From Styela clava (lineage: Eukaryota), in assembly GCF_964204865.1 (NCBI RefSeq), contig NC_135264.1, positions 12,524,001 to 12,588,000 of the forward strand: a stretch of 64,000 bases of DNA, written 5' to 3'. The stretch's first letter is position 1; the number at the start of each line of letters is the position of its first letter. The translations under genes and the position numbers were made by a program. Shown in pieces: positions 152-63,436 of the stretch. The notes beneath the pieces are model-generated. The model was not told the DNA's origin. It worked only from the letters and a program-made list of their open reading frames with translations, and did not search any database.

Positions 152-1432
152 ATGAGACTGTTTACGCTGGTCATTTTCGCCACATGTGTTGTGCTGGGTT
201 CGGCGCTTCCTCCACCATGCATGACGAAAAAACCACCGTGAGTATCAAAGACTAACATGTCCAATTGTTTCGAAAGTTGCGTAATTATTTTATTTGTTAT
301 TATTACAAATTTTTCAATTTTTTCACGAGAAGAAAATGTTGTTTACGGATAGCTGATCAAAGTGTTGATATGCATATTCACAAAATAATATTAAATTTAT
401 CATTTCAAACCCCAAATTTTTTACTAAAAATTAAATTAGAAAAATTTTAAAATTATGCAAGTTTTAAATAATTTGTGTTTGATTGGAAACTAAACAATTG
501 TGTAACTTACTATCTTTCCTTGCGTTATGCTTTTGCGCACTTTGTGTTTGATTATTTTATATGGAAATAATTGCATAGTAGTTATAAAATAAATTATTGC
601 GTAATATTTCAGATCAGAGAACCCCATGAAATGCACACATGTCCCACAGTCGCTGTTTTGCCTTGTTAGACCATGTACTTTTACGGCAATAGAAGGATTG
701 ACATTAATAAACCAAAAATTAAAGAGTGTAAAATTAGCGAAAAAAATCAGAGTAACAGTCGATGAATGCAAGTAAGTATAGTTTGATTTTTTAAGGTGTA
801 TACCAAGAAAAATAGTATCACGTTTTATTATTTTTGTTTCTGAACCAAAATTGTTTAAATTTTTTTTAAATTTATATATTGCCAAATTAGTCCAGAACGA
901 ATTTCTTATTTTATTTTTGAAGAATAATAATATTATCATTTAAAAAAGTTTAATGAGTCGGCCATGGCGAAGTAACTAACATTGTAATCAACTACTGACT
1001 ATTTCAGAATAATAAAAAACATTTTTCTATGTTCCCACATAACAGAAAACCGGGTCAGAAATGCTCTGGGTATCGTTGCCCATGTAGGTGCTACAATAAG
1101 GGAAAATGGATCTGGGAAGTCGGTATGGTAACAGTGAAAATTAATGGAAACTGGGTATCTGTGCCGAAAGCAGTCAAACTCAGGGTAATTATCTAATATT
1201 GCCATTAGGCTTTCTAGATGTATTTGTGTAGACTACACGTGTATTTTAAATCTATAAAAGCAAAGTAATGTAGGCCTTAAGCAATTAAAAAGGTGATGTA
1301 GAATAGAAATGAAAAAAGAAATTATGGAATAAGTTGTGTTTTGATAGATTAGCACCAATAGTAACTAAAAATACTACTATTGCATTTTTATAGGTGCCAG
1401 GGGGTTGCACGTGCACTGAACCTGATGACTAG
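152..1432 (+). CDS. Secreted cysteine-rich putative cystine-knot protein, paralog A1 (140 aa, 4 exons)
   Basis: Exons 152-237, 613-771, 1046-1184, 1394-1432; all GT-AG, phases 2,2,0, open frame. Protein MRLFTLVIFATCVVLGSA-LPPPCMTKKPPSENPMKCTHVPQSLFCLVRPCTFTAIEGLTLINQKLKSVKLAKKIRVTVDECKKPGQKCSGYRCPCRCYNKGKWIWEVGMVTVKINGNWVSVPKAVKLRVPGGCTCTEPDD. Signal peptide, 11 mature Cys, AATAAA downstream. Confidence 0.9.
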
Positions 1433-2039
1433 AATCGATGGCAGATGAAGAAGTTGAAATAAAGAAAATTGAAATTTTTATTCGTAATTAAATTAATTCT
1501 ATTTTGAGCGCCATCAATACTGGAGCAATATAAACAAATACAAGCAAATGTGTGCATTTCAAAGTTGCGTTTTATTTTCATATTGAAGCATTTCTATAAA
1601 ATCCTTCATCAACAATCAGGATTTTCTGTTTATATTTTGACAATATATATACATCTTATAGTGCAGGGGTTGAATTTTTTTTAGTATAAGAGCCGCATGC
1701 AGCAATTCAGAAATATGGAAGAACCGCATAATTTTTCAAATTATTAATATTGAAGTTCATTGAATCATTTTCTATTGTAACTGGTACATTGGTCCTAATT
1801 TGGGAGATGCGCTGTTGTGTAGTGCGACGCGAAACCGGCGTTTGGGCTAATACTCGCTTCGTGTTGTTGAGATTCAAGACTGCGACAACATCAGCAATAT
1901 TTTTTTCACAAAATCACGATCAGAGTATAGAAATTTAGCACGATAAATATTCCATGATATACCAAAATTAGATTCAGTTGTTGCATCGAATTTCTTGCCA
2001 AATGATATCATAAATTTCTGCCATGCGGGGTTAATTTTG

Positions 2040-2256
2040 GGCGAGAGGATTGCTGGAGTCCTCGTCTCCGTAGGGTGCAGTGGTTACGGCTTCCTCCACC
2101 ACGCATCTGGAAACAAATAACTGGCTAACTAATCTCATATTCGACATTGACTGAAACCGGTTACTAACCGGTCGATCGGTCGTAGTTCGCCATATGATGA
2201 AGCCGTCGCGTCGGCTGTCCTGTTCCCCGAGATAAATATGCGAATCCTATCTATCA
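2040..2256 (+). mobile_element. 5'-truncated SINE copy
   Basis: GC-richer segment gcgagaggattgctgg...gataaatatgcgaatcctatctatc, homologous to the fuller copy at 18844-19140. Also duplicated at about 16352-16567. Confidence 0.65.
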
Positions 2257-59657: not shown

Positions 59658-62600
59658 ATGGCACAATTTGTTTATATTGTTTTAATATTGTTGCCAATCT
59701 TTGGATTTTCTGAAATCATTGAAATAGGAGATGCACTGGATTCTGACAAAGTAAGTCAAAAATAGAAATATTATACGTTATTTTGCGTGACATCCGTATG
59801 TTGAAATCTGAAATAATAAATCATTCTCTGCACCTTTTAGTTAACGTTTTGGGAATTCAATAATTTTCAAAAATTGCGTAGAAAAGTTCAGAAATTTTAA
59901 TTTTTGATTTAGGTTTTGCATTTTCTCATAAATGATGTATTCAACTCTGATTATACTAGCAACGTTTGATATTTTAGGATACGCGATTACATTCTTGTGA
60001 ATAATTTAAAAATTATAAAATAAAAATTTAAAAATATCTTGGTGGAGATACCTTTATTTTATGATTTTACTAACTAAGTCGAGGTTTGTACAATGCGAAG
60101 TAGGAAAAAAGGTTTACCAACATGCGTACATTGCGCTTTTAATACTATTCAGTATGCTGCTATATGAAATGAAAATACCTTTCCTGAAATTTGACATATA
60201 ATAATAATAATACGTATTTATTTATTTATTTTTTGCATAGAAGAATGCACTTAACAATTGGATTCCTCTCGCAATATTACCAACAATGTTTCTCCCGCCT
60301 TGTGAAGATAAATTGTGAGTAGAGAGTTATTTTGTTACGTTTATTATTAACAGATCTTTATGAATATTATGTATATAAAAGCATAAGTAATCGGTGCTTA
60401 AGAAAAATTGTAAGGTAATTCTTGATAAACTTTGTGTAAATGATCTAGTTACTAATTCAAGTAAATCTAAGCTGCCCAGTTTGCACAAGACGAATGATTT
60501 TGGCACTGTAATTCTTTGTTACATCATAATGTCTCGTGCGCTTCAAGGGACAAATGTATGGCAGCACATGCAATAGCGACAAAATCCGTTTGAGTCCAGC
60601 ATTCTTCAATAAAACCGCAATGACCAAAACAAAAGATTGAAAACGGACAAATAGATAAAACAAACAATTGAATGAATATTTATGAGGAGATTGTCGCCGG
60701 CTAAAGATGAAACATATTCTATTATCGATTGGTTGTGTGGAATTGATCATGTGTTACACTGTTTATACGATATTTTAAGGAAAATGGGTGCTCCTGAAGT
60801 ATGCGCACCAAGATGTCGCATAACCTGAACCCTAACCTGGTACACACCCTGAGTTCAGGTGTGCGCCATCTTGGTGCGCATACTTCATGAGGTACGGAAA
60901 ATGTGACACGATGTAATATATACAATATTAATGATTACTCGCGGCCCTTGAATAATTGTTTCTGTATGTTGCGGACCTTTCGTTCGTTGGAATTGTGCAG
61001 TCTGCTATACGGACATTGGCGTTGCATGATTTCACATATTGTCGTATTTTTATGTAGCCACGAGCCAATGTGCCTCGACTCAGCACCGAAAAATATGAAA
61101 GATTTGTCAGATGGTTGTGATATTGTTACTTGTCTTTCAATGACTCTTCAAGTGCAAATAAACGGGAAAAATGTAACTCTATTGAATCCTGTCAGCGTTT
61201 TCGGATGGAAATGCAGGTAAGAGTATATTCAATCAACCATTTTTGAGATTATTTACACCTTTGATCCAAACGAAATCTAAGAAACTATAGATTCGTATCC
61301 TTGCGGTATACGCATGCAGATCAACCTGCACAAAGGCACAGAGCAAGAAGAGGTAGTTAGTTTTGCGCACCTTGCTCCACAACTTTTCATTTTAAGCGGG
61401 GGTGTTTCCAAGTTAAAGGGGAGGTAGATATTCTGTTATTAGTGATAAAACTATTTTTAACCTATAAAAATGTGTATATGTATTTGGACTCATGGATGTT
61501 TGAAATCTTGCTTACAAAATTATAAAAAATTTCGTAAATTGTCCCTTGGAAAATAAAGTGTCTGATGTAACTAGAATTCATAATTGCTACCCAAAATTAA
61601 TTTTCATATCTCTGAAGTGCCTCCTAAAGCCCTTCGTGATTCTAAATAATAAAAACGAATGTAATTTATCTTAAACGTAATAAACATATTCCCAGAAAAA
61701 CAAACAAGTCGGAATATTTAATAAAATTAATTTAATCCGATACTTTTGACTTCATTCACGTTCATTGGTTGATATACTTTTTATTAAAGTAAGTGAAGTG
61801 AAGAATTTGAAATTAGTATTTTTCGATGGTTTTCTCAGAAAAACAATAAAGCTACTTGTGGTATTTGCTATTAAGCAAAAAGACTAATTCAATAAAGGTG
61901 TCGTGGAAATTTGAATTTATTATGTTTTTTGGTTTTATCTATTTCACCACAATCTTTAAATGGGTTTTCTAATCTTCTTATCCTTGTTTACTGCTTGACA
62001 ATTTAAAACCAGGCAAAACTTATTTACTACTTAATAGCGTTGTTTAGATATTTGATCGAAGAATTCGATTCAATTTGGAATTGTATTTTATTTAAGGCGG
62101 CATTTTATTAAATCAATATATATATATATGACTGAATATAGCAACTTTTATGACCTTGAGTCACATTTTTGTTATGGTTGAAATAAGCTTCATCATGATT
62201 TTAAAAAGTTTCAAAGCCGCAAAATGATGTTTGTAGAACTCAACAAGGTATGAAAGTAATTTAGATAAGGATTGGGTTTCCTGTGTGTATCATTATTAAC
62301 TTATGAATTCGTGATAACATTGCCTGAAGCCTAAACTATAATATTACAATTTTCAAGAGATTCAAGGTAAAATCGCTTACTATCTTAAACATGGAATGAT
62401 TAAATATGCATGTTTCGGATTGTTAAACCAAGTTTTAGATCTTAAATTGTTGTTACTGCTGCTGTAGCTACTGCTGAAATGAGTTGTTTATTATAGAATC
62501 GTTTTATTGTCAATACCCTCTGCCATGACCGAGTGATATCAATACAACTTTATGTTGTAATTAACAGAATTAAAATACAAAATATCATATTCTGACATTC

Positions 62601-63436
62601 TGATTTGAAATATATTTTTGATTTTAATTTTTTAATAAATTTTATTATGAATCAATATCAACTCGATTGTTGTGCGTGACAATGAATATGATAGTTGAGG
62701 ACATGTCCTAGGGTAAATATCGTGAAATGTTGTCATCCGATTGTCTGAAATGATTTAACATAGCGTACAAACTTTAAAACGTGGTATAAAAATTTGCTAC
62801 ATAAAAAGGAATATTTATTAGGATATCAATGACGAATAATTTGGCAAATAACAATATTCTTTTATTCGTTTTCATTTTATTGAAAAAAAAACATTTTCTT
62901 AATATATTACATTTTAGAGAACCGGGTTCATGCTTATCGGAAAAATGCACTAGTAATAAAACTCTTCAGTGTTTTATACGAAGAAAGAAAAAATGGTGTC
63001 CAAAATATGAATGTAGAACAAAAAGATGCGAAAGAAAACAATGGGAACCAATTGCAAACGGATTGTTCCCATTTGAAGAGGTTACGGTAAAGGTAAGAAA
63101 TTTAATTTTATTGCATCCGAAAGATGGAATGATTAATCTTTCTGATTAAGAACAGAGTAAATCAATCGATATAAATTGTAATCAGACTAACGCATCTTCA
63201 TAAGCGAAAACAATAAAAATACAAGTAAAATACAACCCATAAACTGACAACTATCAAAAATTATACGAACAGGCGTCGTATGAAAAAGGTAGATAATTTT
63301 TGCAATTTCTGGGAATTAAATCTACTCTTGGTTTTATTTTTAACATAATTTATATTTATATTTTTTAAATTTACAGTATCCGTGCGGATGTGAATGCGTG
63401 GAGATTGACTATTCAGATTCAGACAAGAAGTCTTAA
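59658..63436 (+). CDS. Gene D: distant secreted cystine-knot family member (186 aa, 5 exons)
   Basis: Exons 59658-59750, 60241-60314, 61058-61216, 62918-63092, 63377-63436; phases 0,2,2,0. Hydrophobic N-terminus MAQFVYIVLILLPIFGFS, then LPPC, CDIVTC, INGKNVTLLNPV, WKC|R and last exon YPCGCEC. TATAAAA at 59592. Confidence 0.82.
60787..60895. mobile_element. Short palindromic MITE (same family as 37833-38071)
   Basis: gaagtatgcgcaccaagatg ... catcttggtgcgcatacttc perfect inverted repeat, in intron 2 of gene D. Confidence 0.7.

Follow-up and report, generated by a model that had tools for sequence, protein, structure and literature searches.

A lineage-restricted family of secreted, cysteine-rich proteins of the neurotrophin/Spätzle fold class in the ascidian Styela clava

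A 64-kb stretch of the Styela clava genome (G000:C19:12524001-12588000, within a 377-Mb assembly; hereafter the window) contains ten multi-exon loci of a new sequence family, whose basic and fast-evolving proteins belong to the structural class of nerve growth factor (NGF) and Spätzle. The loci share a signal-peptide exon, two characteristic introns and a framework of ten cysteines, and structural models of two divergent members match neurotrophins and Spätzle best. We favor the view that the family consists of lineage-restricted secreted ligands of the NGF/Spätzle fold class, with a probability of roughly 0.55. This figure applies to the ligand function; that the family exists and which fold class it belongs to are far better secured.

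Ten loci with a common exon plan

The loci A1-3, B1-3, C1, C2 and E lie on the plus strand, and D lies on the minus strand. A six-frame translation of the window yields exactly ten matches to the terminal-exon motif [VIYLF][PS]xGCxC, nine on the plus strand and one on the minus strand; block shuffles of the window average 0.1 matches and reach 2 at most. Upstream of every terminal motif is a stop-free segment with the pattern C-x4-C, and further upstream is a signal-peptide exon, which is deleted in C2. The C-x4-C (middle) exon ends with a Cys codon, two further bases and a donor at all ten loci (GT in nine, GC in A3), and the terminal exon starts in phase 0 at all ten, preceded by an AG acceptor in nine and by GG in C2. 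The nine intact models (A1-3, B1-3, C1, D and E) have GT-AG borders, with one GC-AG, a length divisible by three and no internal stop. Four coding exons make up A1-3, B1-3 and C1, while D and E have five, the additional short exon bearing the first conserved Cys. Splice sites were read directly from the DNA, and the junctions rest on sequence signals together with RefSeq models.

The original prediction had proposed a cluster of ten such loci with a common signal-peptide exon lost from C2, an intron following the Cys that ends the C-x4-C exon, and a phase-0 intron in front of a terminal [VIY][PS]xGCxC exon. The motif scan, the splice reading, the exon models and the self-comparison of C1 with C2 bear out each of these features, and the spacing proposed for the A type, C-x30-C-x6-C-x8-C-x35-C-x-C, is arithmetically correct on the RefSeq protein P0003. 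Two details needed correction, namely the minus-strand location of D and the presence of five rather than four coding exons in D and E. The genes had also been called hidden, which is true of the open reading frame track but not of the annotation: RefSeq proteins fall on the window exons at 98-100% identity for A1/A2 (P0003), A3 (P0001), B2 (P0004), B3 (P0005) and E (P0008). All RefSeq models of the family, among them close C-type paralogs, are named “uncharacterized protein,” and we found no description of these genes or of their LOC identifiers in the searchable literature.

Family loci in the window (coordinates, strand, description):

A1, 152..1432, plus strand: exons 152-237, 613-771, 1046-1184, 1394-1432; terminal motif from 1394; 140 residues, intact; RefSeq P0003 (LOC144432360), 98-100% identity
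B1, 3919..5114, plus strand: exons 3919-4013, 4183-4338, 4488-4629, 5061-5114; terminal motif from 5061; 148 residues, intact; one residue different from P0004, the B2 product
C1, 10194..11495, plus strand: exons 10194-10303, 10406-10552, 10796-10940, 11451-11495; terminal motif from 11451; 148 residues, intact; P0006 is 89-94% identical
A2, 14463..15744, plus strand: exons 14463-14548, 14924-15082, 15358-15496, 15706-15744; terminal motif from 15706; 140 residues, protein identical to A1; matches P0003
B2, 20247..21442, plus strand: exons 20247-20341, 20511-20666, 20816-20957, 21389-21442; terminal motif from 21389; 148 residues, intact; RefSeq P0004, LOC120334374
C2, 26278..27377, plus strand: open exons 26278-26424, 26654-26792, 27330-27377; terminal motif from 27330; probable pseudogene
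A3, 29572..31204, plus strand: exons 29572-29678, 30343-30501 (GC donor), 30782-30926, 31166-31204; terminal motif from 31166; 149 residues, intact; RefSeq P0001, XP_039257811, LOC120334373
B3, 33155..34329, plus strand: exons 33155-33261, 33437-33592, 33759-33912, 34276-34329; terminal motif from 34276; 156 residues, intact; RefSeq P0005, LOC144432392
D, 38481..41419, minus strand: exons 41419-41345, 41107-41040, 40851-40639, 40355-39164, 38906-38481; terminal motif from 38906; 657 residues (model), the most divergent member
Low-complexity insert of D, 39203..40207, minus strand: about 335 residues, located at the second-hairpin tip within one open exon
E, 59658..63436, plus strand: exons 59658-59750, 60241-60314, 61058-61216, 62918-63092, 63377-63436; terminal motif from 63377; 186 residues, intact, 14 Cys; RefSeq P0008, LOC120334632 isoform X1, 100% identity

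The RefSeq protein P0006 is either a close paralog of C1 or an older model of C1. In the second intron of A3, the GC donor stands where A1 and A2 have GT, and the RefSeq model also uses GC. About 470 bp are missing from C2, the start codon and signal peptide among them: positions 9752-10296 of the C1 region correspond to about 70 bp in C2, and of exon 1 just the final few bases and the donor survive. Because this part of exon 1 is deleted and the last acceptor has changed from AG to GG, C2 appears to be a recent pseudogene, or at best a gene that depends on a foreign first exon.

Protein framework, predicted fold and relatives

We aligned 18 family proteins; full-length analyses used database proteins, and D, C1 and C2 were searched exon by exon. 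With the exception of D, the mature proteins are about 120-165 residues long. Their ten conserved cysteines follow the pattern Ca-x12-Cb-x8-Cc-x4-Cd-x30-Ce-x6-Cf-x6-Cg-x-Ch-x~37-Ci-x-Cj, in which eight columns are invariant and two, C43 and C104, are nearly so. The six-residue gap between Ce and Cf is kept in 15 of the 18 proteins and in D. Conservation extends to a Pro that precedes the first Cys and to a Val of hairpin 1. An eleventh Cys is present in the A type, and E carries 14. The mature isoelectric point is 9.0-10.0 (7.5 in E), and N-glycosylation sites are nearly absent. There is no long pro-domain, as only about 10-25 residues separate the signal peptide from the first conserved Cys; short basic motifs are found just after the leader of C1 (RRRR) and in the extra exon of D (RRAR).

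The assignment of D to the family draws on several features. Matches of its exons to the family profile are weak but correctly ordered, at 12.6 bits for profile positions 38-70, 7.5 bits for 93-120 and 2.7 bits for 136-145, and it has both intron phases and the Ce-x6-Cf spacing of the other members. Its fourth exon carries a 335-residue insert between strands 3 and 4, in the second hairpin, which consists of 19% Q, 11% P, 10% G and 9% Y, contains no Cys and has no Pfam match. The last exon of D adds a Q/S/K/P/Y-rich tail of 134 residues that ends in K/D runs.

Structure prediction places the family in the neurotrophin/Spätzle fold class. The AlphaFold2 model of A3, built with the family alignment, has a mean predicted local distance difference test score (pLDDT) of 82.9 and a predicted template-modeling score of 0.70, with strands at residues 54-68, 71-88, 103-121 and 124-145. 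P0009, a divergent paralog on C18 that is 36% identical to A3, gives the same four strands at a pLDDT of 83.2. In both models the four long strands form two hairpins, each flanked by conserved cysteines. In a Foldseek search of the PDB with A3, neurotrophins, coagulogen and Spätzle occupy every one of the first 37 ranks, with weak expect values (E) of 0.04-0.8. A Foldseek-independent search of 48,161 chains ranks NGF first (Z 5.1, root-mean-square deviation [rmsd] 3.7, 86 residues aligned) and Spätzle second (Z 4.8), followed lower down by Gremlin, NBL1, coagulogen, IL-17A, sclerostin, GPA2/GPB5, Norrin, PTTH, PDGF and VEGF; all 17 top rows are cystine-knot factors. Realignment of the Foldseek list gives Spätzle 4bv4_L a Z of 5.9 (rmsd 2.6, 60 residues aligned, 20% identity) and NT-4 a Z of 5.6 (87 aligned), with about 25 further neurotrophin chains at 4.5-5.5, IL-17 at 3.3-4.1 and PDGF/VEGF at 3.3-3.8. 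Taken together, IL-17, DAN and PDGF chains score below Spätzle and the neurotrophins (Z 3.3-4.7 versus 5-5.9), and the P0009 model returns the same ranking, with Spätzle 4bv4_L at 5.3. The match carries weight because the lists are uniform, the whole domain is covered and two members with 36% identity agree. A fold of the Spätzle/NGF/coagulogen type had been proposed from the DNA, and these results support it as a fold class.

The models have the layout of the cystine-knot superfamily, with two long antiparallel hairpins and the Cys order I...II-x(n)-III...IV...V-x-VI. Hairpin 1 lies between Cd and Ce, and hairpin 2 lies between Ch and Ci. At their ends, the structural alignments place Ci and Cj on Cys V and VI; at their starts, they place residue 52 of A3 and residue 57 of P0009 on Cys I of NGF, NT-4 and Spätzle, provided that the first residues are aligned without gaps. 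The six knot positions are probably filled by Cc or Cd (I), Ce (II), Cf (III), Cg or Ch (IV), Ci (V) and Cj (VI), with two extra disulfides. The original prediction had taken the second Cys of the C-x4-C pair as Cys I; the alignment starts tentatively favor the first. The interval between Cys II and III is six residues in Spätzle, as in the family, compared with nine in NGF, four in IL-17 and three in TGF-beta and PDGF.

The Spätzle C-terminal cystine-knot domain (PF16077; PDB 4bv4, 3e07 and 7b1c) is the best single structural match, although its scores are modest and tied with those of the neurotrophins. Both Spätzle and the family are secreted, with two long beta-hairpins and an end strand of the form P-x-x-C-x-C, and in Spätzle about 35 residues separate Cys I from II and about 6 separate II from III, nearly as in the family. 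The family differs in having four additional conserved cysteines, in lacking the extra Cys immediately before Cys V, and in occurring in a tunicate rather than an arthropod. Spätzle is made as an inactive precursor whose long pro-domain is cut by a clip-domain protease (PMC8296651), and the family has no such pro-domain. The neurotrophins NGF, BDNF, NT-3 and NT-4 (PF00243) supply more of the top matches than any other group, at Z 4.9-5.8, with 82-92 residues aligned and an rmsd of 3.1-4.4. Like the family, they are basic and secreted, are of similar mature size and have the same order of strands and knot cysteines. They differ in having 6 rather than 10 conserved cysteines, a long pro-domain cut off at a furin site, and a II-III loop of nine residues instead of the putative six of the family.

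Sequence comparison gave no comparable link. At E ≤ 10, Pfam returned nothing for single exons or for A3 (P0001), and nothing significant for the 18 members; the only related match was to Spaetzle in one of the 18, at a nonsignificant E of 1.3. Searches of PDB sequences with four single proteins and the family profile found no relevant match. The NGF hidden Markov model (HMM; PF00243) matched none of the exons, P0001 or the 18 members at E ≤ 10, and its six-frame scan of the S. clava genome returned only noise, at 18.7 and 15.0 bits in unrelated places. The Spaetzle HMM (PF16077) found nothing in the same genome scan, but this model was also silent in all control genomes. Membership in the NGF, Spaetzle or IL17 family is thus not supported by HMM, and what the models support is the fold class. 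In the ESM-Atlas, which uses a protein language model, the nearest clusters are labeled NGF, Spaetzle and IL17, with scores of 0.90 and 0.94; the best of them, at 0.94 with 210 shared features, is labeled NGF and Spaetzle.

The family appears confined to one lineage, as had been proposed. A profile search of 1.84 billion representative proteins recovered 11 real clusters, all from S. clava, a restriction that holds among annotated public proteins, and no described family was matched in Pfam, PDB sequences or the literature. The sole match outside Styela was a bacterial repeat protein, an Algoriphagus DUF7507 protein of 1085 residues (E 2.6e-4, in 7 stretches), which we take to be spurious.

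One possible origin is direct descent from an ancestral neurotrophin/Spätzle gene that diverged past sequence recognition and was then amplified in Styela. Such descent is compatible with the ligand reading but unproven, and we regard it as rather improbable. In its favor are the neurotrophins and Spätzle as top structural matches for two divergent members, the label of the best ESM-Atlas cluster, the lone subthreshold Spaetzle match in Pfam and the Spätzle-like cysteine spacings. Against it, there is no significant sequence or profile link, the long pro-domain and a Gln typical of neurotrophins are absent, four extra cysteines are conserved and relatives are detectable in only one species. 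Moreover, the cystine-knot fold is common to many unrelated-looking families, and Z scores of 5-6 cannot prove descent.

A second possibility is that the family is a highly divergent branch of the complete-knot IL-17 type, T1A, which is reported as lost in tunicates and vertebrates (PMC11087794). The proteins would then signal through IL-17 receptors, which are presumably present because the IL-17 repertoire of S. clava is large. The two families share a cystine-knot-type fold, a G-C-x-C end and a tandem expansion in invertebrate deuterostomes. The terminal V/I-P-x-G-C-x-C strand of the family resembles the end of IL-17, several neighboring ESM-Atlas clusters are labeled IL17, and the fold matches include IL-17 chains, with Z between 3.3 and 4.2. 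These scores are, however, about 1-2 Z units below those of neurotrophins and Spätzle. The IL17 HMM finds 32 exons over its cut-off in the genome, all of them elsewhere, and none in C19:12.47-12.71 Mb even at E ≤ 10; none of the 18 family members matches PF06083. A comparison by hhalign of the family with 14 S. clava IL-17 domains gives a probability of 3.5%, and the only segment aligned is the last 14 columns, the G-C-x-C end. The IL-17 domain of S. clava is also a single exon with a C-x-C-x2-C block, whereas the knot of the family extends over three exons with six residues between the putative Cys II and III. Because the HMM and hhalign results are negative, these are not ordinary IL-17 genes, and a divergent T1A branch seems very improbable.

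The IL-17 genes of S. clava form an expansion of their own, separate from this family. At least 32 single-exon IL-17 domains exceed the Pfam cut-off, mostly in tandem arrays, including C3 2.19-2.23 Mb and 14.84-14.87 Mb, C5 14.72-15.08 Mb, C2 18.35-18.38 Mb and others.

Cluster history, evolutionary rate and neighboring sequence

Self-comparison of the window reveals that an A-B-C unit is present twice, with identities of 99.2% in the A part, 96.3% in the B part and 82.6% in the C part, and that the two units are followed by an older A-B copy at 76-89% identity. The mosaic identity of the two A-B-C units, in window positions 1-29625, suggests gene conversion or stepwise duplication rather than a single event. 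The second unit contains a 2-kb insertion at 17766-19776 that is missing from the first. It is a dispersed repeat with copies throughout the genome at 84-97% identity (more than 5,000 first-look candidates across the chromosomes) and no Pfam-recognizable open reading frame, and is probably a non-autonomous transposon inserted after the duplication. These comparisons show that the family expanded through segmental A-B-C duplication, followed by the decay of C2 and the transposon insertion.

The family extends beyond the window. Its profile locates first-finger exons at about 22 places in C19:12.475-12.704 Mb and at 2 on C18. Including D, which falls below the profile threshold, the S. clava genome has at least 24 family loci, 10 of which lie in the window, where 9 are apparently intact. 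The family tree has long branches and unresolved deep forks, and therefore no order of duplication was read from it.

The ratio of nonsynonymous to synonymous change (dN/dS), counted exon by exon and then summed, is 0.67 for A1/A3, 0.96 for B1/B3 and 1.66 for C1/C2 (small counts, no significance test); B1/B2, a very recent pair with three differences only, gives 0.14. In the A and B pairs, dN/dS exceeds 1 in the first-finger exon, and all cysteines and the terminal exon are unchanged. Such a pattern is consistent with fingers that diversify, or evolve under relaxed constraint, on a scaffold that stays unchanged.

Several other features accompany the cluster, in a window whose G+C content is about 28-41% (2-kb bins):

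37000-37377, plus strand, between B3 and D: exon for a fibrinogen-related domain, C-terminal half only (Pfam Fibrinogen_C, E 2.6e-26), with no match in a phage collection
7452-8107 and 23807-24461: tandem repeats of an approximately 290-bp unit at 96% identity, found in both duplicated units; a short open frame is conserved between the copies
42730-50096: noncoding segments of 0.3-0.9 kb, repeated about 3-4.5 kb apart at 76-87% identity, with no family exon inside
52188-53525 and 56656-58368, plus strand: open frames of 445 and 570 residues, rich in Ser/Asn/Lys, with no Pfam match; they probably belong, as large exons rich in low-complexity sequence, to a gene outside the family

Ligand function, alternatives and significance

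According to the ligand reading, each chain would form two long fingers, both of them beta-hairpins, held together at the base by a neurotrophin/Spätzle-class cystine knot. The proteins would be extracellular ligands resembling cytokines or growth factors, probably dimeric, and may serve in immunity or tissue repair. The fast-changing fingers would contact the receptor, on a scaffold made up of the invariant cysteines and the terminal GCxC strand. At most, a short N-terminal peptide with a furin-type site, such as RRRR in C1 and RRAR in D, would precede the mature domain. Activation by a protease cascade is unlikely because there is no long pro-domain, unlike in Spätzle and proNGF.

Several observations weigh against this reading. 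The family has no sequence link to NGF, Spaetzle or IL17 in Pfam, PDB sequences or the six-frame genome scan with the three HMMs. Z scores of 5-6 are modest, and the aligner itself notes that values below 8 may mean no more than a similar arrangement. Both the disulfide pairing and the threading (I-IV through the II-V/III-VI ring) of the knot are putative. One Gln is conserved in all neurotrophins (PMC2586362), whereas the 18-protein alignment has no conserved Gln column, even a near-invariant one. Neurotrophins are homodimers, and the two-copy (homodimer) complex prediction for the family scored 0.17, below the mark of 0.32, with no verdict given by the tool, a result that speaks neither for nor against dimerization. 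Spätzle binds the ectodomain of a Toll receptor, and only three TIR exons, a lower bound, were found in the S. clava genome. In addition, high dN/dS, strong positive charge and tandem arrays suit a direct defense effector about as well as a ligand. A scan of the window for NF-kB motifs found 2 matches against 1.96 expected, neither of them near a start codon, and the promoters therefore lend no support to immune regulation.

The proteins could instead be direct extracellular effectors rather than signals, either cationic antimicrobial or defense proteins or coagulogen-like clotting or matrix proteins of the hemolymph or tunic. An isoelectric point of 9-10 with ten cysteines, and tandem arrays with dN/dS near or above 1, are what such effectors might show, and a gene with a fibrinogen domain lies inside the cluster. 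The Q/P/G/Y-rich insert and Q/S/K/P/Y-rich tail of D have a composition that suits cross-linking or phase separation, but such low-complexity additions are confined to a few members, D among them. Horseshoe-crab coagulogen (PDB 1aoc), in which this fold serves as a structural or defense protein, is among the structural matches at Z 4.1-4.2; the best matches are signaling ligands, about one Z unit higher. Activation of coagulogen involves cutting out an internal peptide. The family shows no counterpart of this excisable helical peptide, has no Pfam coagulin or other sequence match to coagulogen, and its proteins are smaller than the solved coagulogen chain of 175 residues. With about 120 residues and two long fingers, the proteins are also larger than typical antimicrobial peptides. 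On balance we consider an effector function a serious rival but the less likely one, and retain secreted ligands of the NGF/Spätzle class as the preferred explanation.

Neurotrophins and Trk have been reported as missing in Ciona and as lacking in tunicates (PMC2772990, PMC2586362). A bolder interpretation, which we think doubtful, is that the neurotrophin/Spätzle ligand was not lost in tunicates. It would survive in Styela as an unrecognizable family of two dozen genes with ten cysteines and no pro-domain, acting through a non-Trk receptor (for example, a Toll-like or other leucine-rich repeat receptor), with D carrying a prion-like, Q/P/Y-rich domain at a finger tip.

A large, fast-evolving ascidian family of this fold class would give the nearest invertebrate kin of vertebrates a class of secreted ligands or effectors absent from current catalogs. 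It would also inform the question of how, at the origin of vertebrates, systems of cystine-knot cytokines disappeared, were replaced or arose anew. Such families can escape surveys that rely on sequence alone, and structure prediction recovers them. The genes described here are concrete, cloneable candidates for studies of tunicate immunity, wound healing or tunic biology.

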